A stretch of DNA of 63,703 nt, the filler included, from Lenisia limosa (taxonomy: Eukaryota > Protista > Breviatea), in assembly GCA_001655205.1 (NCBI GenBank). It is 8 parts of 8 records of this genome, joined end to end, with 100 filler letters (N's around TTAATTAATTAA, not from the genome) between each part and the next. Parts side by side here need not be neighbours in the genome. Positions count along the whole stretch, not along the records: positions 30,668 to 53,728 come from LPNZ01009018.1; 7 more parts are not named here. One strand, 5' to 3'. Both the position numbers and the translations under genes were made by a program. This document shows, in pieces, positions 1 through 53,728 of this stretch (positions are counted from its first letter, which is position 1; every line of letters begins with the position of its first letter). The notes under the pieces are model-generated. The model did no database searches. It was not told the DNA's origin and saw only the letters and a program-made list of their open reading frames with translations.

Positions 1-30
1 CGTGGGTTCCCAAAATGACAACCACACACA

Positions 31-31896: not shown

Positions 31897-34435
31897 CTAA
31901 ACCTCCAACTGGACTTGGGCTGGGAACTTCAGCTGACTATAAACAGCCTTGACTGATTTGAGAGACAAATGGTCAAGCGCTGAAGATGACGCCTTGTTAA
32001 GAGAGTCACATATGGCCTGAAGCAATAAGAGAGTCACATATGGCCTGAAGCAATAAGATTAAGTAGTAGAGACCCTTCCCCTCACAGCTACGCCTTTATG
32101 GCTGCCAAGAGGATTGTTGTCCAAAATCAGAGTCTGAAGGGCATAGTTCTGCTTGAGGCCTTTTGCCAAGGAAAGTGCATTCTGGGGGATATCAAGGAAA
32201 GGGCAATATGAGGGGAGGTAGGATATAGAGCGAACTGGTGTGAGTGTAACACTTATTTGCAGAAACAAAACATCCAAATATAATACAATTTCGAGAAGAT
32301 ACACAAAGCAAAAAGGCGAGGCACAGTGGGTTGCAGGCCTACCTCGTAATTGAGACGGTTTCCGGCCAAGTTGAGGGAGGACAAGACACTATTATCGCAC
32401 AAGAGGTCCCCAAGAGTTTCTTTGGTCCCGGTTGTAGGCGATGTGGCAAGTCCGTTGTTCGACATATTCACAACCTGGGGGGGGGGGGNNNNNNNNNNNN
32501 NNNNNNNNNNNNNNNNNNNNNNNNNNNNNNNNNNNNNNNNNNNNNNNNNNTTGGCTGACAACACGAGGGTTGATAACAAAACAAACAAAGCCCAGGCTGG
32601 TCGCTTCTGCAGCACATCATCCCTCACTCCAACGGTGGTGAATGTTAGATAATATTTGTTTTGTATTTTGGGGTTTCCAGAACTCGCACCTTCAGATTTT
32701 GATTCACTCGAAGGCCTTGAATCACAGCCTTTGCGCCTTGTAATCTGACAATGGTGATGATGATGATGGTGGTGGTGATGATAACGGTGATGATGATGAT
32801 GATAGTGGAGTGATAATGCCCCCCCCCCCAACCTTAACGATGATCTTGAGAGATCTAGCTCTTCAAGAGTGAAGTTCTTGGCGATCATTTCTCCAAGGGC
32901 TTTTCCTCCAGCATCCCCACAATTGTTACCACTAAAATGGTCAAAAGAAAGATTATAATGATTAGAGCAATAAGAATCTCTATTGACAGTTAAGCCATCA
33001 ATACAACTGGTAAGGCATCTATATGTCAACATTTAGTATCATATTTGTCAACAGACCCCACCTCAGATTCAAGAAGCGCAATGAAGGGTTTTGCGCCAAG
33101 GAGGCGGCAATCAAAGCAATGTCTTTTTCTGTAAATTTGTTTTTTGAGAGGTTCAGCCTGACGAGGCTTCGGTTTGTTTCAATCATCGACGCAATCGCGA
33201 TCGCACCCTTTGAGCGTTATTCCCTGGTCCAAAAGACCTATTATCGATGCTGATCGAGGAATTATCGAGAGACTTAGATTGGACTGGTTACGAAGTAATT
33301 AGACATAAAAACGGTTTTATCAGAATAAGTCACCCAAGCATTCCCTTCACGACTATCTTCACCCCCCCCCCCNNNNNNNNNNNNNNNNNNNNNNNNNNNN
33401 NNNNNNNNNNNNNNNNNNNNNNNNNNNNNNNNNNNNNCAGATCTGTGATCTGACAATTGGTCATTGACAGGGCCTCGGAAAGCGCTTGGGCACCGCCGCA
33501 GCCGATGGAATTGTCCGAAATGTGCAGCGTATTAATTGCAGTGTTAACCTGGGGGTGTAAATCGCCAATGAGGTTTTCGTTCATATATTAATAGACATTT
33601 GTTCATATAATGGCCAAATACTATTCTTGAAATCCATTGATCATCTGCCTACTCTGAGGGACGCGGCTAAAGCTTCCATACCCTACATGGTGAGACTTGA
33701 CGTTATCATATGTACAATTTGGGGCTGCATTGAAGTAATATTTGGAATATGGTAAGGTGCTGCTACTTTTTACGACTTAAAAAGTCCTGTTTTAATACGC
33801 ACATTCTATTCGCCCCCAGGAACTGCATTTTCTTTGCACCCACCAGGGGACCCAAGCCATGGTGGGCCATGCGGAAGACGTCTTCATGAGACCGCTTCAG
33901 GTAAAACGTTACTGGGACGCATCCTAGCTCTTCGCATTTCTCAAGATACGTCTGTTGACATAGCGAGGTGAAAGTGGAGTACTTGCCTGAAAAGGAAGTT
34001 AGAAATGGTGAAGGTGGAGCTAAAAAGGAAGCTAGAAGAGAAACATGGTGAATTCCAGGCTGTATTCCCCCTCCCCCACTTTTACTCTGAACTTCATGAA
34101 ATTCTTCGTTAAAATCAAAACCGGCTAGTTCGTCTTCAGAGTCTGGGGGGGGGGGAGTAAAATTGGAAAATTTATGAAACAAAAAAAACCAAATCAACTC
34201 TCTGNNNNNNNNNNNNNNNNNNNNNNNNNNNNNNNNNNNNNNNNNNNNNNNNNNNNNNNNNNNNNNNNNNNNNNNNNNNNNNNNNNNNNNNNNNNNNNNN
34301 NNNNNNNNNNNNNNNNNNNNNNNNNNNNNNNNNNNNNNNNNNNNNNNNNNNNNNNNNNNNNNNNNNNNNNNCCCTCCAAACATTATACCCCCTCTAACCA
34401 GGGTGCTGAGTTTCTTCCGGTTCTGGAGATGACAT
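31897..34435 (-). CDS. LRRC74: LRRC74-like RNI-type leucine-rich repeat protein
   Basis: MSSPEPEETQHPDSEDELAGF...; family-like N-terminal YLEKCEELGCVPVTFYLKRSHEDVFRMAHHGLGPL; RNI-type LRRs (LHISDNSIGCGGAQALSEAL, LNLSKNKF, SGNNCGDAGGKALGEMIAKNFTLEELDLS, LNLAGNRL, LILDNNPLG); ends QVQLEV*. Confidence 0.75.
31998..32058 (-). repeat. 28-bp tandem duplication spanning an acceptor site
   Basis: Minus-strand unit CTTATTGCTTCAG|GCCATATGTGACTCT x2. Confidence 0.8.
32551..32630. repeat. High-copy dispersed A-rich repeat (…ACAAAACAAACAAAGCCCAGGCTGGTCGCTTCTGCAGCAC…)
   Basis: Related segments at 4700-4739 rc, 23640-23690 rc, 34146-34204, 52135-52240, 54700-54970 rc, 55590-55651 rc, 57040-57095, 59740-59890, 59945-60065 and 61700-61760. 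Confidence 0.8.
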
Positions 34436-36064
34436 ATTTGGCCTAAATGTGTAAATAATGTAAATATCATTATATTATGTATCTTGGGATCAAGAAACTG
34501 AAAAAAGTTTGTATCAGGTCGAAGCAGTCTCATGTTAACAAGGGTATCATATATCTGATTTTACACACTATGACAAATATCTCTTTTAGCTTCAACCAGA
34601 TCCTTTTTTAAATTTCTAGATATCATATCAACACTATGACAGCGGAGTATTATATGATATATTGCCCCATATCCACAAGTGTTATTATAATATGACATAA
34701 TATGTAGTACTTTCCATCAAAATGATGAAAGAGATAACACCAGGGTTTATCCTGAGTGTATCAGAGTATAAATGAGACTAGACGGTCAATTTTCAGAGGC
34801 GACACGGCATCATATTACTGCGTGGAAAATGATAGTATGTGTGAAAAGAACGATATAGTGTACGTTACAACAATATACCCCTAGCTGGCGCTCCGCTGAA
34901 TAAGGAGGCCCACATCCAGCAATACTGGTGAAAATGAACATTTAATATCTAACTGCACTGTCACCTCCATCCTCCATCAAAGGGTATAAATATAAACAAG
35001 TTCTTTATTCCCATGGGCTCCATAGTTGAGGAAACGCTAACCCCCCCNNNNNNNNNNNNNNNNNNNNNNNNNNNNNNNNNNNNNNNNNNNNNNNNNNNNN
35101 NNNNNNNNNNNNNNNNNNNNNNNNNCTTGAGAGTACTCAATTGGTAATCAGACAGCAAGAGCAAATACCAGAGAGATTGATTTCGAGTGAGTGGGAGTAG
35201 TAAGGGGTGGGTTCAACCCAAATCAACCAACGCCCTTTTGGCCTGTGTCTGTGTGGTGGTGGAGAGGAATGAGCAAGCAAATGAGCAAGCAAATGAGCAA
35301 GGATAGGAATGAGAGGTTGGAGAGAGAGAGGCTAGAGAGGCAAAGATGAAAAAGGTTGGCTGGTGCAAAACGATTGAGGGGATGGCTCCATAAACGTATT
35401 TTTACAGGGTACAAAATACTGAGGTAGAGGCAAAAACAGAACAGCACCCCTTCCCTCTTTGCCTTATCCTTTAATAAAGTTATTATAGTAAGTAAACCTG
35501 TTATTAAGCCTTTGTGAAAACTAAAATCAAAATACGTGCGAAATACTCCCAGAAACTCTCTCCCTCCTTTCTTTTTTTTCCGATTGTTCGTTGGTTAGGC
35601 TGCTCTCCATATCATCATATACAAAGTGTTCCTCATGCATGTTCACTGAAAAAAAACAGACAACACACAGATACGCACAATCCACAACCTCTTATTGTCC
35701 AGAACCTCCTCGGTCCAAGCTAATCATGGAGTTGGTACGAGCTACTACTCAACAAAAGTGCTTTGCAGGAGTGTTCAAGGCTACAGTATGTTGGGTATTT
35801 TGAACGTTCTGGAGACGTTTCTGGCTGCGGAAACTTGCTGGAGTAAGCCAGAACACAGTTATGGACCCCTTATGGCTCTCCTTCCTTGAGGTTCGGATGT
35901 ACACTTTCTGGGATATTTGCTCTGTGATTTCCCAAGGAAAATAGGTCAAGACTTATCCAGGTCACTCAGTGGTACCTTCTCAATTGGTAGAATTGCGAAT
36001 GATGTATTATTCGTGGATGATTCAACACAATTCATTTTTTAGTTATTCTATCCTCACAATAAAG

Positions 36065-36322
36065 GCTTTTTTACCATTCACTCCGCGGGATGACGAATAC
36101 GGATACATGAAGATTGTCAACGGTTTGTTGGTGTAAATGTAATCAGCCGAGCCAAAATTGTATGTATTGTTACAAACGTCATTGCAATATTGTTCAGTCT
36201 TATATTTAGGTCAAAAGTTTTCGATTCTTTCGATCAGTCGTGGTCTCACTGCAACTGCAATGGTTATCAACAAGAACGGTTTCATCGGTCGCGTGCCTTT
36301 CAACTACTTAAGAGACTTTCAG
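36065..36322 (+). CDS. Two exons encoding a divergent SH3-like domain, possibly the N-terminus of the helicase-RBR gene
   Basis: Spliced in phase: FLPFTPRDDEYGYMKIVNG|QKFSILSISRGLTATAMVINKNGFIGRVPFNYLRDFQ, with an SH3-like G-x-V-P-x-N-Y-L end. Confidence 0.5.
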
Positions 36323-36771
36323 GTAAAGTGGAACACGATGAAGAGAAGACAAAACCAGATTCAGACTTTGTTTATGATATCATACTATATAGCCTCATAC
36401 ATTTGGACATTTTGTTTGTTATTTTTGAAGGAGAAATGCATTAAAATTCCGGCTTAAGTGACCACATTATGGTTTAAAAATCTGGTGTAGTCCTACAGAG
36501 AGGACAAAACCAGGACTATGACTTTTCCCCCACAATCGGGAGGTACAAGTACTGAAGAAGATATAATATTACATATTTATTGTTTTGCTGTTTCTCAATT
36601 TTTAGGTTGCGAAAGGGGCCAATGGAAAGCGAATCCCTCCAGAAACCTTTAATAATATTGTGGGTTTGGGAGGTTAAAAAGAGGCAAGCATCAGAATGTG
36701 TTACGTCACGTAATGTGTTATGCCACGTAATGTGTTATGCCACGTAATGTGTTCACTTTTTAATAAAATAG

Positions 36772-39700
36772 CCTTGTTTAAAAGGAAGTCGCTGCACTTT
36801 CCAGAATTGCACTTATCAACACCCGCAAGAAGAAAGAATGTTCGAATCCTTCAATAGAGAGGTAATGTATATGATAATAACGTGCCGATAGAACCTACTT
36901 TTTGGTATTGGTCAAGTTTATTCTTTTAGGACTGTCCACATGAAGACCAATGTACAAATTTTTTTTGCAAAAAGAAACACCCAATTGAGGTGTGCTGAAG
37001 TCAAATGTATTGATACTTGATCAATTGAATCAATTAGGGTTGTTTTGCCAATATCTTTTAGTTGCTTTGGAAATTGAAACAGAAGAATTTCTTATTGACT
37101 TTAGGAAAGGTGCTGTCGGTTTGGTGAATTCTGTCCAAGTCAAACTGAATGTAAATATTGTCACCCGGTTATCAAGGTTAGTTGAAATTTTGTCAGATCA
37201 ACTTCTCTGGCAGAAATGAGTTATTTTTTTAAGGATTGCCGAATGAAAGACAATTGCAAGTTGGTTTCTTGCAGGTTCAACCACAGTGACAATCGGACAA
37301 CACCTTGCTTCCGAGACAGTGCCTGTGATTCCACAAACTGCACTCTTCTCCACTCTTCCAACAGAAATGTTTGTATTTCATAGGAAGGGCTTTAATATGA
37401 TAAAAATTGCTGTTCAATTCCTATAGTAGGTGTTGAGCGGGCTACAGTGTTTTGATTACTTTGGTTTATATCATTCAGCAGATACAGACCCCCTAACCTA
37501 GCCAGTCTGCGAACAACCGATCAAACCGTCAGGATCAATCAATCCGTTCTTCCCCCAATCAATCACAGGCCGCACAAATGTCGGTTGGATTTGATGTAAT
37601 GTTAAATTAAACTGTTTCATTTTGATTTTTCGATATTCCTTGTTTTTTACTGATGTAAATTCCCTGAAAATTACTTTTTTTTTTTTTTTTTTATTTTTTT
37701 TTTNNNNNNNNNNNNNNNNNNNNNNNNNNNNNNNNNNNNNNNNNNNNNNNNNNNNNNNNNNNNNNNNNNNNNNNNNNNNNTAGACGGCTTCGGCCAGATG
37801 CAACATTTTTTATTTTTCATATATATATTATAATATTGTGCATGTTGATGGTTTAGTGAGGAAAGCCTTGTTGTTAAAGAGGAAGAGGTATGTTGGAGGT
37901 GTATAGCCAATTATGTGATATTTTAGTTGAAGGCAAAGTTAGAAAGAATCCAAACGTCTTTTCCGGAAAGGTGAGAGAATGTGGAAGCCTCGTAGTTGTA
38001 TAATTCTGTAGAATGAGCAAGCAAGAGGTTCAGTTCAGTTTCCGTCAATGTCGCCGCTTCCCTAAAGAAGTAAGTAATTGATTGTCTTTGATTGTGTGAT
38101 GAAGGGGTTTTTGGCTTTGAATTTTTTCAAAAATGTCCTTTCTTATTTTGTATTAGAGATATTTTGTAACCTGTTTTTTGCACATCTATAAACTACTTGT
38201 ATAAGTCAGAAGTTGACAAGTACAGACAAGTGATGTAACTTGACTAACATCCTAGTTTGTTGTCTATTTTGACTCGCTACATAAGCTGTTTGAGCAAACC
38301 AAAAAGGAGCACTTCGATGTTAATGATTTCAAATTGATGGTGAAGGGGGAAATAAATGTAACAAAATTAATTATGTATATTATATACTATATTGATACAA
38401 AATTGAACAAAGAGACCTTTGTGGTTCAGATTCACTGCTCCATTTCCCCTCAACACGCCAGGTTGAGTACATTAATGATTTTGAACTTCCAGGATACTTG
38501 CAACAACTAGAGGTACGCATGATTCAATACAATAATATTATTTTTACCTAAATATATCATCAGATGATGTGTGTATGATATGATATATATACTATACATA
38601 CAATTTCTTTTTGATTTCTTAAATGGCAAAATATATAATATACATAGTACATATATATGTATATACAATGTCATATGATACGTGTTAATTAATGTAGGCC
38701 AAAACAGAAAAGGTTGCTTACTTGGAAAGAGCTATTGAAAACACAAACCTCTTCATGAATAAGTTGATGCAAACTCTTGGTACGATGTATGTATAAAATT
38801 AGATAAAATCAGAGGGTGTCTGATCAAAATAAATATAATATGATAATATAATATTTAGCTATATTATAACTCATACTATTATGTATTATACTATGAAGAA
38901 ATGAGAAATATAAGGTTGTATCTGGTTCAAGCCGTCCGTTCACGCCATCACACTTTGAAGAGAATTGAATTTATTAATCCACCAATCATTTGCCTAACAA
39001 CTTAGTACACAAATAATCATGTGTTAAAACTTTATTTAATTTGTCAAAGTAAGATATTTTGCATAGGCTGAAGGTTGGGTTGATGTTATGTTTAAAGCAT
39101 GTTGCCAAACAGTCACCCTTATAGAAAGTATGACTTGTGTTCAGCTAAATATTCTGATTCAAAGAGAGTCCTTCAGGATCTGTAATTTCCTCCCGTCTCT
39201 TGCATTTCGAAACGAGGTGAGCTCTATGAGGTGTATTATAGATATAATAATAACAGATAGTACAGTATATTATACCAAGGATGCTTTCGATTTGAAAATT
39301 ATTCTTGATAATTTAGTTTATGGCTTTTTTGTTTACCCCACTTTTTGGGTTTTCCGGCATTATATAGTATCTTCTGTTATAAAAGCCAATTATTTTATTA
39401 ACGTTTTTGTACATACGATTTCAAAAATGAACCCTCCCACATGTTACAAGAATAGATACTTTCTACAATTGAAACCAACCGGGTAGCATTTGTTATTGGG
39501 TCAACCGGAAGTGGCAAGTCAACGCAGGTTTGTTGTGTCATTGGCACACAGTAATGAAACCCGTGTTGTTAATATATTATATACTACTATCACATCATGC
39601 CATTATGGATTTACTCATTTTAGATTCCGTTCTACCTCGCTCAAAACCACAAAAAACCCAAGTTTTCAGGAAGAATTGTTCTTTGTACACAAGTGAGCAT

Positions 39701-42700
39701 CAAATGAAACACTTTCTGATGCCATTTTTATTGCTTTGTTATTGGGGCTGTTTGAAAGAAATGCGACGCATAGTTTGATAGATTTGTAGTTTGGCTTTGC
39801 ATTTTTGAAAATTGAAGTTATTTTACAATCTAGCCGTCTGCTGTTGCAGCAAGGTCTCTCTATCATCGAGTCAACGCGGAGTATTGCAACACCACGGACG
39901 CCTGTAAAACACTCCAAGAAAATGTCAGTGGGCACTTAATAGTGCTGCATATTTAAGCTTATAATGCTATTTCAAAAGCAAAGTGGAGGCAATCTAACGC
40001 TATTAATATATCACACTGATATTATATTATCAAAAGAGAAATTGTTCCGAAAAGACCAACTTTCTTGAAAATCTGTTTACGGTCAGGCAGTAGGAATTCT
40101 GACGGCAAATATGAACCGAGTACATCAGAGCAACCAAGTTATCTACATCACTGAATCTCGTCTCCTTAACGCGCTAGCTAATAAGAAGCTAACTCCTACT
40201 GTCTGCTACCGTACCATCACTCCTTTCAGCTGAGCTCTTGATATATCATGCGTTTCAGCTATGTTACCGTTTAAGATCGGGTTTGACAAAGTCACCTCCA
40301 TCATTTTGGACGAAGCTCATGAGAGATCTCTTGAAATGGACCTTCTCCTTGGGTTAGCAAAGACGCCGCCACCAGCAATTGAACATTGCAAAGTAAGGGT
40401 TGTTTAAAGAAATTCTCAATTCTACAGTCAGAATTGAATGGTTAATTATAAATTACAAAAGAGTATAGGGGTTATGATTCAGTGTTTTGATCTAACATAG
40501 TATATCACTATCACATATGAAATTATCATTTCTCACATCACTTGACCTTTGTTTCAGATTTTGATTCAATCTGCCACGCTCAATTCCAAATCAATGAAGA
40601 CATTTTTTGGTGTTGTGCCTTGCGTCAATATTATCGGTTTGGTGACTTCTTTCTCCTGTAGTGTTTACATGTCTATATAAGTTACTCTCACAATTTAAAA
40701 GAATCAATCTTGGAATATAATATGATCATGGTTCATTTATATGATAGGTTTCCCTTCTCACCCAAACAGGGAAGTCTTTTCCTATTGAAACGATATATGA
40801 AAATGTCTTGCCCGACGACGACGTGTTTCATCTTGCTGGTATGATGGTGCAATTGGAAATGCTAGAAAAGTAGTTCTGTTTTCTTATTTAAATGTAACCA
40901 ACAGAACATAATAATAATAGCAGAATGATATTATATACAGTATAACAAGTATTGACCAACAAAATCAAATGCATCTATCGCTGATAAATCAATAATATGA
41001 TCATACACTAATATTATATTCAAGGCACACTGAGTTGTAAGGTAAATGATTAGGAAAATTAATCACTATTTGATCTCTTATTAGCGTGATGATATGACAG
41101 CTTCGGTGAGATACTTTCTAATTTGTATTTTATTTCTCTACGTAAAACCTATTTGACTTTGTTTAGGATCAACAGGTCATCACCGTGTTCTTGTTGCAGC
41201 TATCAATCGAGCTTGGACCATCAACCAATCAAATGTTGGATGTTGAAACTAAAACATAATTACGTTTAATAAATATAGTATTATAATATGATACAGTTTT
41301 GTAACTGAGGGATTGCAGATTGCTTCAGTGTGTTGTTTTACATTCGGTTCAAGAAAATAGAAACGGCCAAATTGATTTTTTCAAATCTTCCTTTTACAAT
41401 TTCCTTTCACCAAATGCAGGCCCCCGGAAACATTTTATGTTTCGTCGCCAATTTGGAGCAAGCAGAAAAGGCAGTAGAAGATTACACACAATTGGTATTA
41501 TTCTAAGTCATTGTTTTACTTTTGATCTGTTCATTTTACTCACTAATACTCTTTTAAACTTGTGATAATTTTGTTCATAATTTCAACTTGAATATCGAAC
41601 ATGCAATCATATCTATCATGGATAAGGGACAGTATTACAAGTTGAAAGTCGATTGTATGACTTGAGACTTTGTACGCAGTATTTTGATTGAATTTGCTCC
41701 ATTTCCATTTCACCTTTTATTTGAATTCAGGCCGAGGAAGACAGTTCTGTTGCCTACGCGTTAACGGAGTCGAATACTGAAGTTTTCCCTGACATCATGA
41801 GACATTCAAAACACCGGAAGGTTAGGGGACGTAAGACCGTGTTAAGTCAAAGCACTTCAAACAAGTCAAAACTAATCAGGGGTTTTCACAGCTCTTACTA
41901 TTTAGGTCATATTCGCAACAAAAATTGCCCAGACTTCCTTGACGCTTGACAGTGGGTGAGGCACTTAGAGTTTTGCTGATCTGAAAAGAAGCAAAAGCAT
42001 GCTAAGAAATTATCATTCATCTTTTAGAAATAGGATTTGTGATTGATTGTGGATTTGAGGAAGTTAAAGTCTTCGACCCCAAAATGAGGTTATCATCTTT
42101 TCAAGTAAGGGCATGTGAATATGGTGTTTACTCTGTTCAATTGTAACATTTTATCTTAGTTGCAATATTTTGTTCTCTCCCATATTTCCTCCTGACATAT
42201 TAGATGAAGGCAATTAGCAGATCTTCAGCCATTCAAAGGATGGGTCGAACTGGAAGAACCCAACAAGGAGTACTCTACCGGATTTACTCGTACGCAAGGA
42301 ATATCAGATTATTAATTATAGCAATCCAAGTGCAATATATTAGTGTAAGGAATTTTGTTTCTAACTAAAATAAGATCATTAAATAGTATGGTTTGATACA
42401 GGATCACCTGCAATCATTCCCACCTGTTGATTACATTAGACATTCCGACTTCATCAATATGGATGACCAGTGTTCCCGAAGCCCCAATCAGATTTCTTCT
42501 GTCCTACATCTTGCCAAATTGGTAGGGATTTCTAAGTGGATGGATACTTTAAAATTAGCAGGTTTCTTGTCCCTCTTCTGATATGTATCACCTTCATTAG
42601 AAAAGAGTTCCGTATTGTCACACTTTTAGGGCTGTAACCCAACGACTTTCAATTGGGTCGACCAACCGTCTCCACTTTCTGTTGATTCAGCGTGTAAAGA

Positions 42701-45700
42701 CCTAATGAGACTTGGACTTCTTGATAAGAGAGACAACATTTGCAAAGACGTGGGCAAATTGCCGCTTTTTGGCATGAGGTGAGGGGTTGTTGGTCGTAGT
42801 ATCCATGAGCTGCAGTTTTTATTTCATTTCTTGTTTTTCCTGGAGTCTCTTTTTCGTTGGAGGTGACATCATTTTGTCTCAAGATAATATATCATATGTA
42901 GTGAACTTGAAAGAGGCGACTGGGAGTATAGATTGACAGAAAAAGGGCATGAGGTAAGGGCTTGATGTATAAAAGACAGAAATCTGGACGCAATCTGGAA
43001 CATCAAATCAGTTTACGAAGTGTCACCTTTTGACTAGGTTATTCGCCTACAACTTGATTGTCCCTTTGCAGCAGTTTTGGTTCTAAAAGGGCTGGAATAT
43101 GGCCTTGACGTTTACCAGGTTTGATATTGAAAAATATGGAATTAATGATGACCAAATGTTCCAATGATTTATCGATTAATTATTATTTATCTCATATAGA
43201 GAAAAAAATATCATATTTTAAACAAATATCACTCAATTCAATAATAGGTTGTTATTTGAAAAAGTCTTCTTTGAGTAAGGCTCTTTTTTGGACCATTTAC
43301 TTGTTTTTCATCATTTTAAAGATATCGGAAGTGCTTGCAGCTGTTGAAATAGCGCGGAGTGAAGATATGTTTTCCAAATTACAGGAGAAAGCTGATGGAA
43401 AAACTAGTATGGCACATTTTGCCTACAGCGTGTTCCATAACTGTACAAAATCGAGTACTGTTATGCACGGAATGAAAAATATGGCTAGAGATCTTTTCAT
43501 CGAAAGACGAAATGCGATCACGACAACTCTGTGCAATGCGCTAAAAGTTATCAACAACAGGTCAAGGTATGTAAGCAAGTCGGAGTGATGTAGTTAAGGT
43601 ATCATCGCAATACTCTTTGTTTAACTTTATTGATTTATATTGAATATTACAAAACCCAAGATTATATCATAGCATAATATGCCTTCATAATATTGCTAAC
43701 CAACAAGCTTCAACTAACCAAAAAGGGCAAGCCTAGTTAGTGACACCATATTTACCAGGCTTATCTGCACCTATCGCATGTTAAACCTTGCCGTTCGCAC
43801 TAGTGACAATAATTACTTTGCCTGCTTCTCTAGTAAGCACGGAAGATGTCTAAAACGCGTAAAATAATGGAGCGAGTATTTCATAAATTGCGTTTTTTTG
43901 ACTTGTTTGTGTATAGTGTCTGATATTTCTTGAAATTTTTTACTTCTCAAACAGCCTCCACTGGAACAATAAGAAAACGGTTGAATGCAAAGTACATACT
44001 CTTCGACAGTATTCAAAAAGTTGGGGTCATACAATTATCAAATATTATGTGATATCATATTTATCAATATCATTTCCATATCATTAATATACACGGATAT
44101 CATAAGTAACAATTACTATATGAATAATTTACAATCAATTATAATGTAATATTGCATCAAAATAGTTATTTTTATGTTGTGTCATATTAAAATTTTAGAA
44201 GGAAGAAGTAGTTTTTGTTGATCCTATTGTTGCACAAGAAATTGCGCCAATTTACACACATGAATTGAATTGCGTTCCATCAATTCAACTGAAATTCGCT
44301 TCAAATATCTCCAAAGCAGTCCTTCATGTTTTTGATAAAATGGACAACATCAAAACAATCACTGGATGCAGCTCTGTACCAGAAATCAAGTTGGCTCAGG
44401 TTTACCTTGGTGTTTATTTCCCCAAAGAAATGGTTTATTATGGGAACTTTTTGACACTCAAGAATAAGTAACATTGTGAATTTTTTTGTTGTAGTTATTT
44501 TTCGAATTTAAGTCTGAATCCTCATTTTAAACCTTATATATCAGCTACAATCTCAACACTATATCGTGCCTCGTTAGTGAGCATTCACAGGTTAATGTTA
44601 AAGTGAGTGATGATAATGATTGGATGTGTGTTTATCTGTTATAGAATGAAATGGAGTCCTTAATATGGAAGATAACAAAAGACTGTTCAAGAGTAATGAA
44701 GGTTTGTTGTGATGGGAGCGTTTCTATTCATATAGTATATTGAATAGATGCTATTAGGTTTATTTGGAGAGGACCAACAATAAGATAAGCACATATAAGC
44801 CGTACATACAATTTTCCAAAGCAAAGAACCTGGTTTTAACAAATATAGGAGTTAATCACTCAAACCTCAAATCGTGTCATTCTTGGGGCAGGTAGGAGAT
44901 CCTAACATATGAGGAAAATTTTTTGTAAAAGTGACAAAAATCTCTACCACGTTTAATAATTCAAAAATTCTGATTTATCACTTTAGGCGGTATCACAAAG
45001 TACTTAATGACATCTGCAGAAGAGTTTAGATCAATCAAAATTCTGACAGAAAACGTGTTTGGAGTAATATTTCTGAGTCCTAGATTATAATGCACAGTCA
45101 TCTGTCAAATAATAATTGTATTTTTCATTTCTAGGTTTATACTACTTCCGCACGTATCACGTTTTGAGTTTTTTTAAATGATATTTGGCATTTTTAATTG
45201 TCCAAACATTATGTTCATTTATTAAACTTTCAGACCACAACAAAAGAAGACCTTTTATTGCTGATTGAGGCGTCCTATATCCATGTTGACGAGCTTTACA
45301 AGGTATACACAACAGCAGATAAGTAATTACCATTTGTTGATTAATTCCCCCGTGTTATTTTTCTTTCAGTGTTGTTACAGTTTTAGTTTGAAGAGTCAGA
45401 TGAAATCATAACATGGGTTGCCACCTGCTCGGTGGGTGCAGGTAGTTATGTTGAACCTTTTTGTAGTTGTTTACTGTGTAATAGACTTCCAGAATGATTT
45501 GGCAATCCTATCATTTGAAAATATGAGATTCACACTTTTGGTCTGATAACTATTTGTATTGAATTATTTCCTTGCGTTTACAGTGAAGGAAATGGATGGC
45601 AAACATTTGTTGGAGCTTTTGAAAGACAATGGGTTCTCAGCTTTCCCCAAAAGGCCTGTCTCTTCAAAAATAAATCAACAGAAGTAGGATGATGTACTAT

Positions 45701-48700
45701 GATATTTAATAACGGTTCTATTGTTACCTTTGTATTTTACAATTTTTACATTGTTTAGCCAAGCAAGAATTACCATTTCGATCCCCCTTGCTTGTTCAAC
45801 AGGAGAAGCAGACATCAAGTGCTCTACGAAGAAATCTGCTGATGAAATTGTGGTAAACTTTGGGGCATTCTTTCTTGGAAGGCGTCTTTAACATAATATA
45901 TAGCTACATATTAATGTACAAAATAGTGATAATGTGTATATAATGTACTTTATATATGATAGTATATTATATGTATAATATTGGAATTGTCTTGAATAAT
46001 GTTTTTCTCACTATTTTTTTAAGGCTGAAGCGGGCACTCTATTTGGACCTGGCGTTTTGGCGTCAAAAAAGGTGGGGGCAACTAGGGATGGTCAGTCTGG
46101 AATAACCAAACCATTTATCAAAAATAGATAAGATAGTATTGACAACTTTGTTTTCCGTACAACTGAGGTGTTTTGTCATTTTCATATTTAACAATTTAGA
46201 GATTCACTCACAAAACGGTTCAACTTAAGATGTTACCAAAAGAAATATCAGAAGTATGTGGTAGTATCTAGTTACAGTCAGTGAGTGTGTTAAATGAGCA
46301 TGCATATACTAGGTTTCCTGGTGATTTAGCAGTGTTTCACTTAGTTCCTTGTTGACACTGTTTGACCGTTTAGGAGCATTTGAAAGAGGTACTACTTAAG
46401 AAATCAAGTCAAATTCAATCAGTGATTGTCAAGCGTGAGGTACCAGACAAAGAAATGGTTTGATTCTTTCAGTATTGATTTGATGTACTGTTCTTCCTAA
46501 GTTGACGATCTCCAGGTCATGGACAGTCTTAGAGACTACTACAATATGCGCCAAGGAACAACAGAGTCCGAGTTAAGTGATATTATAGTGCGGAATTGCC
46601 TTCCTGCTGTCACAAATTTTACGGTGAGGTTTGATTTGGCTGCATTTTGCCTTATAAATACGTTTGACTTTCAATAATTCAATTTCTTGATAAGTCAATG
46701 AGAAGGTCTAATAACTACTTTAGTAGTAAAACATTTTAATTTACATTTCAGCACGAAATCAGGACTCTTCAAAACAATGGATTGTGGAAAATCATTGTCA
46801 TTTTTAGAAGCCATGATGATGCTGATAGGGTTGAAGCAGATAATTTTTTCACAGTTTGAAAACTGCTTTTGAATTAACTTCCAGATTAACGATCAAATAA
46901 TTCAAGTTAATAAGAAGTTCTCTGCATATGCAACAATTCCTCCGGTGTGCTCAAGTGTTATTTTGTTAAATCACAAATACACACAAGAATATATTAAAGA
47001 TGGTAATTCCAGTGTAAGCATTAAACCAATTCATTATGACGTTTTTCATAAATAGAGGTTATTTCAGTGTAGTTCATGTTTTAATTTACCTAAAGGTTAT
47101 TTGGGAACATCGAACTGACCTACTGCATTTGACTCCTGATAAACCTGTTACTCTCGTTAAAAATGTGGAAGTGGGCTCCTGGTTTTTTCCCGATTATCAG
47201 ATTGTCATGAACTGGAAAAGTGCAAAACAGTTCTCTGCTTTAATGTATAGCCTGTTTTTGAATTTTTATATTGTCAAACTCCTCTAGGATGTTGAACCTC
47301 AATGTTTAATGATTAACGCATCACATTAAACAGTGTCTTTCAAGCATAACAACTGCTAAGAATCTAGGTCAAGCTCGAGAAATCCCCTGTTGGAGGCGCC
47401 ATCAAACTTCAGGTAAATACTCCCATATTTTGTATCCATTAAGGTATAGTAATGTAGTCCTGAGTGTATAGTTTTGCCCAATAGACTTAATTAGATAAGT
47501 CAGATTTTTCTACTTGTAATACAAGGAATTTTTTTTATATTCCTGCTTTCGAGTTTTTAATTAATCAGCTACATTCGAACAAGCGACCTAAGATTGATGC
47601 CTTCCCACGATTGTTGGCTCAGTGTTGCAGCATGAAACTGTTAGACCATCATAATGTGAGTTTAGTGTGTTCCAGTCATTAAAAATCACACAATTTGAAA
47701 TTATTATCAAAATATCCGTGTGGTTTGCTTTATGTTAAGATTTAGAGTTATATTCATCTTATATATATTTCATATTGTAATATAATATATACTGGTATTT
47801 GATTGATATATCTTCAGTCACAAAATTGCTACATTGACTTGAGATAAAGCGCATCCGTGATAAGTCTTGTCACAGAGATAAAGCTTAATATTAGTGTCAG
47901 GACTTATTGCGGTCAGTGTACTTTTATAGCCTCATTATGTTGTCATATATTTGGGGTTTTTTATTGAATTCAACCAGCTAAATATTCAAATCTCCCTTGG
48001 CAATGGTGCATTTATCATTTTTTTAGGCGCACTGTCTGTTTTCAGAGCACGGATTAGAGATTCTCGAGGGTGTGAAGCGCGAGTTTGGAGCTGTGTTGGA
48101 TTGGAACGTGAAATTTAAACAAATTGTCATCAAGAAAGACGCTGAGGGTCTTTATGATTCTATTGTCAAAACGCTTGATTCCTTGGACGCTATGGATCTG
48201 TATGGGGGCTTTTTTTCGAGCAAATACTAACTGCAATGCAAGACTGATGGTGATTATTAAGGGGTCGTGCACATAGATTCTGATGGACTGAACCACTGAT
48301 GAGATAAATATCATCATTGTTATGAAGTACATCGTGTTATACATAACATAACCTGTTTTTTAAGAGACTCAGGCAGAGTTAATTATAGAGTGGTTTCTAT
48401 TCCCATTGTTTAGGAATCGCTTTCACTTAAAGGATGGCCGTTCTCAAAAGAAAATTATCGACAAAATCAAAGTGGGCTGACAAAAAGCTGTGATATTTTC
48501 AGGAGAGATATTTCACTTTTGACAAATCTTAAATCGGATGTTGTTCAAGTTTTTTTTCAAGAGTCATCTACATACTCTATATAGCTCTAACAATGTAGGA
48601 AAAGGGTCTAATTGAGACGAGCGGCAATGTGAGACTGGATTGTATATGTTCGTTCTTTCAACAACATAAGATATATAATACCCCGACAAATCTATTATCG

Positions 48701-51639
48701 TTTCACCCCTGTATCTGATGTTCTGAGACTCATAAGATGTTAGAAACAGATTCGAGTAAAATACATATAATTCAGAGCAATATCATATTAAAAATATTAC
48801 CGGGAAAAGTCTCGACTGATTTGCTATGTGATTCCCAAGGAAAATCAAGACTTACTCCGGTCACTGTATGTATGTATGGTGGCTGACACTCTAGGGAATT
48901 GTAGTCTTTAGGTATCCTTCCGAATTATTTGAAAGATTACAGAAAAGGCTTCAATCATATCTTCTGTTTGCGAGTTTTGGTTATATAATGATGTTTATTT
49001 GGTCAAATTCATTATAATTAAAACTGATTCAAAATATGTATGTTGTGAGCATGGGTATATTAACCCCATGGTTGTGAGTATGTTTTCACTCTGAAATCGT
49101 AATATTTGACAATTGTGTCAGATCCAAGATCTACTGAGGGGAACTCATACACTATGTATAAAAAGTGACCCACCCGGTGGCTGTTCAATTCCAGTGTATC
49201 CTTTGAATTTTATCATTCAGGGAGCCTCCCTCCCTTGATGACACAGAATGCCCAATTTGTTTTTGTAATGTGACTGAAGCCCGGAAGCTGGATAACTGTT
49301 CTCACCTCTATTGCCGCGAATGCCTCGAGAGTTTAGTAAGCGCGGTTCAATAGTAACGTTTAAAGAGCAATAGTATAGCACAAATATCGACACAACATCA
49401 TTTCAGAGTGGTATATCGATGATGAATTATCAATAATTCTTATTATACTAATATTATTGGTGTTGAAACTATATGATGAATTATCTAATATTATTGGTGT
49501 TGAACGCTCCACTATGTGTAGTGTATTTACATTCCGTAATACCTATCAACCCACCCTGATGTTCAACCCCAGCTTGAAAACAACAACACACCAAAATGCG
49601 CTCATGGCGAATGCGGCATCCTCCTGTCTGTTGACGACATTCTAACGTTTGCATCAGCAAAATCTCAGAAAGCTCTTTTGGAAAGATCCATTAACGTGAG
49701 CTCTGTTGTGAAAGTGATTATAGACATTTTTGCATTTTCAATCCACATTATTTGTCTCTTGAACTCTGCTTGAAAAATAATTGTTAAAATCTCTTTCTAC
49801 TTTTACCACTCAAGACTTTTGTGCGTGAACACACAGCTTTCTTCAAATGTTACGGAAACTGTGACACTGTCTTGTCAGAAAAACAAGGTAGCTTTAGAGT
49901 GATGTCTGAAAGTAAACTAAGCCGGGATTAATCTAATAAACCAAACTCGGCGGATTTACCTGTTCAGTAACTGGCGATAACGTCGAGTGTGACAACTGTT
50001 CCAAGTCCTACTGTGTGGTCTGTAGTGAATCTGCTAAAGCACCTGTGGAAAGTGAGAGGGCCAGTACTTGATTTTACTTTTTTTTTTATCCAATCCTGAA
50101 AATTGTTATGGTTTAGATTGGATTATTGAGAACCTTTTTTCTCATCTCAGCATGCAGCTTATTTCTCATTATATTTAGGCCACCCTGGAACAAGATGCCA
50201 GTCCAATAAGCAGGTTGGACATTTTGAGAGATTTTAAAGGGTGTAATGCTGATGCCTTGTTCTTTTATTTATTAATGCGTTCACTTTGTTTTAATTAATA
50301 TAATACTGTTGTCTTGTTCTTTGATTTGGGGGTAAAATATGTTACCTTCCTTGTCCTGGAAGCTGTATCACATTCATCATGAGTCCAGGTGATGGGTACC
50401 CTCCGCCATATTGAGGAAGAAATCCTCACAAATAGATGCCCCAACCCTGAGTGCAAAATGGCTTGGTTTGATTTTGATGGTGAGGACGGAGGGGAAAGAC
50501 AGAGTAACATTATCATTACCGTGTATTGGCAACAATTATTGCCTGAATACATTTTTCTTGTTGAAAAATCGAAACTATGTTGCCTGAACCCTAATGTATT
50601 TGATTTTGACATATTTACCTCTCACAATCAACAGGTTGTATGGCGTTGAAGTGCGAACAATGCAAAACGGCTTTCTGTGCTGTTTGTATGAAAAATTGCG
50701 GTCAGTTGGTAGGAATATTGCATTTATCATGTGTCTTATTCATAACGACGATTCATATGATTGCTTTACCAAAATCACAGAATTTTTATGGAAAAAACAT
50801 GTGTTAGAAGATTGTAACAAGATGTGTAACTAAATACCACGTTAAGAAGTGATACTGTTACTGAGAAAATAAGACCTCCACAATTATCTTTCGCTCTTCA
50901 GGCTTTCATTGTGGTTCTGAAATGGGACATATTTTACACTCCAGGAAATGATGCCCATGGACACGTCCTCGAGTGTCCTGTTTTGTTGAAGAGAAACCAT
51001 GGAATCAAAGAGTATGCTGGAGGCTTTGTTACCTTGGAGGGGGAGGGTTGAAAGATATCTTATCTTCTGATAGCAACATGTATTCATTGATATTTGTTTC
51101 ACCTACAAATGATATATTTTTCTTCTAAACATTTAGTTATTTCATTGATAAGAGAAGATTCTTTGAAATCCAAATAGCACACAAGACAAGATTAGTGAAG
51201 GTAAGGTTGTTTTACACTGAGGATAACCAAAAGCATCATAATAGTTTCCAATTCCCAATACAAGGGCTCCGTGCAATTAATTTTTGTAATTAATTGCAAA
51301 ATTTGAAGTGAGGCATTTTCCTTTGTTGTTCAAATTTTGACAATTAATTTCTTCAAAAAGTATTGTCTATTCTCCCCCTAGCATGATCATCATACCATAA
51401 TGATCATTGAGGGGTCTTTTTCTATGATTTGTTTATTGGACTGTTCTAGAACTATCTTCGTCAATCGAACCTCTCGACAGATGTCCGCAACAAGGTAGCC
51501 GAAATAGTGAAAGAGGTGAGTAAGGTACACTTCCTCCTCAGCACACTTTGTCGCAAAAGAGAACTTGCAGTTTTTTTTGGACCTTCGAAGGAAGACTCAA
51601 ATTCAGGATACCAGAGAGGATATCGATATCATTCTGTGA
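36772..51639 (+). CDS. CCCH zinc-finger / DEAH-box RNA helicase / KH-like / RBR E3 ubiquitin ligase fusion protein
   Basis: Four C-x5-C-x4-C-x3-H fingers (36772-37365); Walker A GSTGSGKSTQ (39498-39527); ILDEAHERSLEMDLLLG (40309); SAT; GKSFPI; VIDCG; QRMGRTGR (about 42234); RING1 CPICFC...CSHLYCRECL (about 49250); IBR CYGNC...CDNCSKSYCVVC...H; RING2 RCPNPEC...DFDGCMALKCEQCKTAFCAVC; stop TGA 51637-51639. Confidence 0.9.
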
Positions 51640-53359: not shown

Positions 53360-53584
53360 NNNNNNNNNNNNNNNNNNNNNNNNNNNNNNNNNNNNNNNNN
53401 NNNNNNNNNNNNNNNNNNNNNNNNNNNNNNNNNNNNNNNNNNNNNNNNNNNNNNNNNNNNNNNNNNNNNNNNNNNNNNNNNNNNNNNNNNNNNNNNNNNN
53501 NNNNNNTCCAAACCCCAAAAAAAGCAATAACAAACATGAGTAACACACGTTAAATTGGGCAAAACCAATAACAAAACAGAAAAC

Positions 53585-53728
53585 ACATAATAACATTGGG
53601 GTGGCGGAATAAATGACACATAATAACATGGGGGGTGGCGGAGTAGATGACACATAATAACATTGGGATGGCGGAATAAATGACACATAATAACATGGGG
53701 GGTGGCGGAGTAGATGACACATAATAAC
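53585..53728. repeat. Roughly 33-bp minisatellite at a contig end
   Basis: Unit similar to ATGACACATAATAACAT(T/G)GGGGTGGCGGA(A/G)TA(A/G), four or more copies, no spacers. Confidence 0.9.

Follow-up and report, generated by a model that had tools for sequence, protein, structure and literature searches.

A predicted helicase-RBR ubiquitin ligase gene of the breviate Lenisia limosa and the CCCH zinc-finger exons upstream of it

A stretch of 63,703 nucleotides (nt) from Lenisia limosa (GCA_001655205.1), made of eight parts of eight records joined by 100-letter fillers and called the window here, carries at positions 36772-51639 the exons of a CCCH zinc-finger array, a DEAH/RHA helicase and a RING1-IBR-RING2 (RBR) ubiquitin ligase, all on the + strand of the part taken from LPNZ01009018.1 (30668-53728). 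Positions are those of the window. A preliminary description, made from the sequence alone, had placed the three in one gene. The domains and catalytic motifs of both the helicase and the RBR are present, and much of the helicase part is spliced and expressed in poly(A) RNA. The arrangement that we favour, with moderate confidence, is two + strand genes head to tail, an SH3-like/CCCH gene followed by an RBR gene of the "Helicase" subfamily. Gene 1 (~35726-37383) would encode a small protein that has an SH3-like segment and ends C-terminally in five Nab2-type CCCH fingers, and gene 2 (38013-51051; ~53 exons; ~1,515 amino acids (aa)) would encode a divergent ligase of the DEAH11/DEAH12 family.

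Domains and catalytic motifs of the helicase and the RBR

The helicase exons were curated by hand against RNA joints and helicase motifs, which gave a coding sequence (CDS) of 26 exons (38013-44399) that encodes 806 aa and has no stop. Motifs I, Ia, II, III, IV, V and VI are all present, spread across ~20 exons, and are read in order in the spliced CDS as GSGKST, TQPSAVAARS, DEAHERS, SAT, a motif IV segment, ATKIAQTSLT and QRMGRTGR. Motifs I, II, III and VI, claimed earlier, are borne out, and the set is extended with Ia, IV and V. The transcript data were the contigs of one small poly(A) metatranscriptome run, compared with 36500-42499. Nine GT..AG joints were found in these RNA contigs (38069>38256, 38339>38462, 38512>38698, 39923>40087, 40392>40558, 40636>40770, 40838>41167, 41234>41420, and 42289>42440), and three loose ends of RNA contigs match the starts or ends of neighbouring exons, for a total of twelve supported junctions.

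Comparison of the motif II and motif VI exons with the PDB gave 57 and 49 matches, respectively, nearly all to DEAH/RHA helicases, the last entry of each list being one weak unrelated match. The spliced 806-aa product aligned with E. coli HrpA over aa 130-549 (420 aa, 135.5 bits) with motifs I-VI collinear, and the next ~75 residues were weakly collinear (z=3.6) with HrpA 484-555, which covers the winged helix (WH) and the start of HA2. Single HA2 and WH exons gave no match in Pfam or the PDB. The junction between exons E4 and E5 (38779>39074) has a poor acceptor, and a small model error is possible there. Several further DNA contigs, from a public run, align with short stretches of 38832-39002 in the E4-E5 intron and then diverge, which suggests a dispersed repeat inside the intron at the place where the splice model is weakest.

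The RBR module was read from its Cys/His pattern and from Pfam and PDB matches. RING1 shows the ligand pattern C-P-I-C ... C-S-H-L-Y-C-R-E-C ... C-A-H-G-E-C, the IBR C-x4-C ... C-x2-C-x4-C-x2-C ... H-x4-C, and RING2 (Rcat) C-x4-C ... D-G-C-M-A-L-K-C-E-Q-C-K-T-A-F-C-A-V-C ... H-x5-C, with the catalytic Cys in D-G-C-M-A-L-K-C. In Pfam the RING1 exon matches RING models (E 5e-7), and in the PDB it matches RINGs (E 3e-5); Pfam also finds IBR at 49970-50062 (E 5.7e-4) and IBR_1 at 50637-50699 (E 1.9e-3), in separate exons, and the Rcat exon matches the HOIP catalytic region weakly. With the ligands in order and the catalytic Cys in place, the full RING1-IBR-RING2 reported in the preliminary description is confirmed. 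The stop codon follows 30 codons after the last zinc ligand of the RBR; all the domains lie within the extent first given for the gene (36772-51639), the end of which overshoots this stop. No AATAAA was found within ~250 nt after the stop, so poly(A) signals are unusable as evidence here.

From these parts, the product of gene 2 would run from RecA1 and RecA2 through the winged helix, HA2 and an OB-like end to a spacer of ~480 aa and the C-terminal RING1-IBR-RING2. Its helicase core would bind single-stranded RNA and hydrolyse NTP to drive 3'->5' movement or the remodelling of ribonucleoprotein. RING1 would recruit E2~ubiquitin, the ubiquitin would pass to the RING2 cysteine and from there to a protein that is bound on the RNA or near it, and the auto-inhibition usual in RBRs may be relieved by RNA binding. 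The helicase-coupled RBR ligase proposed at the outset was correctly read at the level of its domains and is the likely product; we infer the presence of both halves in one mRNA, the coupling of the two activities, and the substrates. The RNA activation, the poly(A) binding and the antiviral or surveillance function suggested at the outset are speculative. Table 1 collects the features.

Table 1. Features of the two predicted genes and of the interval between them (window positions)
Feature	Positions	Strand	Basis or remark
Putative first coding exon, upstream SH3-like/CCCH gene	35726-35785	+	sequence reading, without RNA or homology support
SH3-like segment, two exons, ending G-R-V-P-F-N-Y-L	36065-36122, 36210-36322	+	resemblance by eye
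CCCH array, five Nab2-type fingers	36772-37368	+	four phase-0/0 exons
CCCH exons (the last, exon D, with two fingers)	36772-36861, 36930-36989, 37105-37176, 37234-37368	+	regular expression, PDB, Pfam
Longest exon-free interval of the locus	37369-38012	+	643 nt in the window, ~597 real
First coding exon (E1), helicase-RBR gene	38013-38069	+	RNA joint 38069>38256
Helicase exons 2-26	38256-44399	+	RNA joints, curated CDS, PDB, HrpA alignment
N-terminal region of the helicase gene	within exons 2-26	+	
RecA1	motif I 39456-39527; Ia 39624-39923; DEAH 40276-40392; SAT 40558-40636	+	
RecA2	motif IV 41420-41494; V 41906-41951; VI 42204-42289	+	
Winged helix	42440-43118	+	
HA2/ratchet exon	43322-43566	+	
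OB-like end	43759-44399	+	judged by eye
Spacer, ~19 provisional short exons, ~480 aa	44400-49220 (4.8 kb)	+	predicted boundaries
Exon with G-L-E-I-L-E-G-V-K-R-E-F, claimed KH-like	48027-48199	+	exon chain, reader's frame
RBR module, eight exons	49221-51051	+	Pfam, PDB, Cys/His pattern
RING1	49221-49335/49344, 49573-49695	+	
IBR	49815-49887, 49968-50063, 50179-50213	+	
RING2/Rcat	50389-50479, 50635-50700, 50945-51051	+	
Stop codon TGA	51049-51051	+	

Gene boundaries

A six-frame search of the piece with a regular expression for CCCH fingers found them in the array only (pattern C-x5-C-x4/5-C-x3-H), and 100 Markov shuffles used as control gave a mean of 0.23 matches and a maximum of 2. At least four fingers had been claimed and five were found. 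Their exons have Nab2 fingers as top solved-structure matches in the PDB (E 0.0035-0.006) and match Pfam zf-CCCH_tandem (E 2e-4) and zf-CCCH_2 (E 0.022), both below the Pfam cut-offs. In the putative first coding exon of the same gene, the ATG at 35726 has A at -3 and G at +4, the donor is GTATGT, and the exon is in phase with 36065. Neither 36065-36124 nor 36212-36322 gave an SH3 match in Pfam when searched singly, these exons being short for the test, and the very short exon candidates upstream of the array gave no Pfam match, PWI-like included. A 17-nt tandem repeat (AATGTGTTATGCCACGT, 3.5 copies, 95% matches) at 36695-36753 lies immediately upstream of the acceptor of the first CCCH exon.

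Fusion of this array to the helicase gene is unlikely. We regard the array as likelier a separate gene because E1 opens with an ATG behind an in-frame stop, the longest exon-free interval of the locus separates the two, and the splice sites available for a fusion are weak. The ATG of E1 (38013) has A at -3 and an in-frame TAA (38001-38003) 12 nt upstream. The downstream exons set the reading frame of E1, and an acceptor placed anywhere before 38004 therefore brings in a stop. The RNA contig that joins 38069 to 38256 extends only 20 nt into E1. The interval itself contains ATTAAA (~37606), a T29 run, an assembly gap (37704-37780) and a TATA-like run (~37826-37843), and is a probable intergenic region; the frame of exon D reaches TAG at 37381-37383, 4 codons past its donor, if the weak donor 37368/37369 is unused. 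The novel N-terminal finger array on the same chain is therefore improbable, and of the proposed single gene the helicase-RBR part likely stands, from its exon chain and known domain order, and the CCCH part is unlikely to belong.

Two further observations concern the interval. Segment 37456-37607, which is C/A-rich, can be read through 30-47 codons in each of the three + strand frames, and every candidate exon that might bridge the CCCH array and the helicase gene comes from it; it could be a 3' untranslated region (UTR) instead. A 37-codon upstream open reading frame (ORF) occupies 37890-38003, from ATG 37890 to TAA 38001, and ends 10 nt before ATG 38013; it would act as such if transcription starts upstream of 37890. 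Joining exon D in frame to an exon at 37880-37970 was ruled out, the target needing two carried-over bases and exon D leaving none.

Helicase and RBR, on the other side, are with good probability one gene encoding ~1,515 aa. We read them so from the strong + strand signal in the spacer, the limit on its exon-free intervals and the known domain order of such fusions. The spacer reaches an exon-chain score of 123 on the + strand, compared with 45 on the - strand and a range of 13-42 over 20 Markov shuffles, and an in-frame chain of exons with ordinary splice scores connects 44199 to 49221. In the resulting provisional model (53 exons, 1,515 aa, no frame breaks, introns of 58-371 nt), motif VI lies at aa 472, the HA2 exon ends at ~aa 700 and RING1 starts at aa 1291, which puts motif VI ~810 aa and the HA2 exon ~590 aa before RING1. 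No exon-free interval in the spacer exceeds 371 nt, and consequently there is no room in it for a 3' UTR and a promoter. Pfam searches with single spacer exons gave no match and no RWD or other RNF14-type domain, and by eye several of these exons look like alpha/beta modules. The segment 48027-48199, claimed as KH-like, is probably a real spacer exon; it has no GxxG loop and no KH match in Pfam, and the claim is unsupported. A single-sequence AlphaFold2 model of it is one long helix (pTM 0.41) and is uninformative on KH.

A number of observations weigh against the arrangement in two genes. On the upstream side, an in-frame route leads from 37368 through 37506-37579 to 38012 (donor 2.7, acceptor 2.7) and another skips E1 and joins 38256, and no RNA contig lies on the CCCH exons or on 37369-38049; this one small run covers the helicase exons patchily too, which makes the absence uninformative. 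On the downstream side, the spacer is spanned by no transcript or homologue, its exon boundaries come from a predictor trained on the same locus, and the helicase frame ends at 44469 if the donor near 44389/44399 is unused. Searches with single exons retrieved no relative, and membership in the Helicase clade rests on domain order and spacing.

The upstream points leave some room for a single chain of ~1,700 aa that joins the SH3-like segment and the five-finger CCCH array to the DEAH helicase, the spacer and the RBR. The finger array would then be an extra poly(A)- or RNA-reading module, carried by all transcripts or only by those of an alternative upstream promoter. We consider this improbable, although it is the strongest competitor of the two-gene arrangement. 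The parts are collinear on one strand, the CCCH exons are all phase 0/0, and a stand-alone SH3-like protein of ~200 aa with five fingers would, in our judgement, be unusual. The exon-free interval would then be two introns around a cryptic exon of 74 nt (37506-37579) that leads to the acceptor at 38011/38012, and the introns needed, 137 and ~386 nt, would suit the locus. Against this, splicing at the 38011 acceptor would make the ATG that follows the in-frame TAA the first complete codon of the exon, and three of the four splice sites required are in the lowest sixth of the curated sites: the routes need a donor of 2.8 (37368, the only sensible one of exon D, which carries no bases over), a donor of 2.7 and an acceptor of 2.7, compared with medians near 4.9 for curated donors and near 5.1 for curated acceptors. 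Acceptors inside E1 (38022, 38028 or 38034) offer a further in-frame route and are very poor (-1.0 to -4.0), and the route that skips E1 conflicts with the lone RNA contig joining 38069 to 38256. That no RNA contig falls on the CCCH exons is weak evidence in the same direction. The best-matching solved fingers, ZnF5-7 of Nab2, are C-terminal in Nab2, and a chain combining CCCH, DEAH and RBR did not come up in full-text searches of the literature.

The downstream points bear on a reading with three or more genes, in which the helicase would end at 44469, the RBR would be independent, for example RNF14-like, and their order would be coincidental. Exon 44199-44399 is indeed open to the stop at 44469, DEAH helicases can end soon after the OB fold, and the lowest exon scores of the model fall in 44400-45230 and 48230-49220, beyond the 36500-42499 covered by the RNA comparison. 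Order and spacing nevertheless fit the known fusion family (PMC2904391, PMC3904995), and it should, by our estimate, be rare for a DEAH helicase and an RBR to lie side by side by chance in that order and on the same strand. The RING1 exon lacks an ATG and is entered in phase 1, and neither an interval long enough for a 3' UTR and promoter nor an RNF14-type domain turned up in the spacer; we hold this reading to be less probable still than the single chain. That the locus is a decaying copy with relic exons and no full-length protein is very improbable: the protein is highly divergent, the 81-aa HA2 exon has no relative among 1.84 billion representative proteins and some motifs are off consensus (TQPS for TQPR, ATKIAQTS for ATNIAETS), but spliced transcripts of the gene occur in poly(A) RNA, the 53-exon model is free of frame breaks, and the catalytic residues of both enzymes are all retained.

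Assembly gap and neighbouring features

Positions 30668-53728 are AT-rich (29-43% G+C) and without long ORFs; numerous short open segments with GT..AG borders on the + strand point to a eukaryotic, gene-dense contig. For comparison we used contig NODE_453 (24.3 kb) of the ENA metagenome assembly ERZ3820729, a copy of the same contig without N, which is 99.9-100% identical to the window outside N runs; the poly(A) run belongs to the same study. The 77 N of the gap at 37704-37780 correspond to 31 real bases in this copy, which have stops in all frames and are preceded by a long T run; the gap is non-coding. A DNA contig of the public run has the same 30 letters just before 37781, and with the ungapped copy this makes both sides of the gap continuous. 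The length of the T run beside the gap is uncertain, and Logan contigs break there. N runs occur at 32489, 33373, 34205, 35048, 37704, 52367 and 53360. Those that could be compared with the ungapped copy stand for real sequence of another length, as with the 77 N above, really 31 nt, and a run of 78 N that replaces 52 nt of C-rich sequence; gap lengths in the window are thus placeholders only.

A neighbouring gene on the - strand (32253-34533) encodes leucine-rich repeats of the ribonuclease-inhibitor type (Pfam LRR_6, E 1.6e-4 to 9e-3), with a histidine-rich tract from an ATG/CAT-type repeat at 32751-32808, and is transcribed divergently from the CCCH gene. The piece ends, at 53520-53728, in tandem repeats with units of 34/67 nt (4.4/2.2 copies) and 41 nt (2 copies), which are probably the reason why the contig stops there. 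Rfam gave no match in the whole piece.

Relatives and comparison with known systems

The searches were made with single exons, and those of the spacer, the N-terminal region, the SH3-like segment, the WH and HA2 are very short. Of ~45 exons searched singly in Pfam, none scored except those of the RING, the IBR, the CCCH fingers and the P-loop. HMMER with the 81-aa HA2 exon against the 1.84 billion representatives returned only the ORF of the contig itself and two unrelated repeat proteins, a tblastn-type scan of JGI metagenome contigs with the same exon gave no match, and a look-alike search of the ESM Atlas with it gave unnamed clusters only. A word-indexed protein search with exon 44199-44399 and the E2 open frame gave no candidates.

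Prp16, Prp43/DHX15, DHX8 and HrpA, the best single-exon matches in the PDB, share with the present gene all the helicase motifs and the order RecA1-RecA2-WH-HA2, weakly collinear in WH and HA2, and, unlike it, have no ligase module; relative to canonical DEAH/RHA helicases, motifs Ia and V are altered here and the putative OB region is short. Nab2 and ZC3H14 resemble the present array in their tandem C-x5-C-x4-6-C-x3-H fingers, but the matches are weak (E ~0.004), the upstream part looks SH3-like, no PWI-like domain being recognised there, and the predicted protein is in all only ~200 aa long. A CCCH finger and a DEAH helicase share one chain in DHX57 and in plant C3H31/DExH8, which have one finger instead of a five-finger array and no RBR. 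ZNFX1, RNF213 and RNF14 show a general likeness, an NTPase or an RNA or ribosome sensor working with ubiquitin transfer. ZNFX1 is a UPF1-like SF1 helicase and RNF213 an AAA+ protein with a RING, neither with an RBR, and RNF14 combines RWD and RBR without a helicase; no homology to the three was seen here beyond the shared RBR/RING.

The Helicase (Plant I) subfamily of RBRs is ancient, occurs in unikonts and bikonts, animals included, and has been lost repeatedly in animals (PMC2904391). Within the architecture first described as unrecognised, the helicase-RBR pair is a published fusion (PMC2904391, PMC3904995), and the element claimed as new is the Nab2-type finger array, perhaps with an SH3, at the N-terminal end. 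The literature that we found on this family consists of phylogeny (PMC2904391) and a single functional study, a phenotype paper on cotton that uses neither the term "E3 ligase" nor the term "RING" (PMC13407882); it contains no report of the helicase controlling the ligase. DEAH12 also serves as a single-copy nuclear marker in clams (PMC8765752). As an N-terminal novelty the finger array is unproven, and a neighbouring gene is the more likely origin; if the array were on the same chain, which is a minority reading, it would be a new way to confer RNA specificity on a Helicase-RBR enzyme.

Judged from its domain order and spacing, the helicase-RBR pair is probably a new and divergent member of this known fusion family, and its helicase part is expressed. 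In Arabidopsis DEAH11/DEAH12, soybean GmHELRP1/2 and DEAH12-like proteins of animals such as clams, a DEAH/RHA helicase with HA2 is N-terminal, a long spacer follows, and the RBR stands at the extreme C-terminus; members of the subfamily total ~1,500-1,800 aa and are patchily retained in animals (PMC2904391, PMC3904995, PMC8765752). In soybean the helicase domains and the RBR lie ~750 aa apart (PMC3904995), and the likeness of the present spacer to it rests on the provisional spacer model. As a divergent, expressed copy with intact catalytic residues, the Lenisia limosa gene is a data point on how widely the fusion has been retained, and it could become a second test case for RNA-gated ubiquitination. 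Compared with the rest of the subfamily it is very divergent and shorter (~1,515 aa), its model is divided into 53 tiny exons, and the CCCH gene lies directly upstream.

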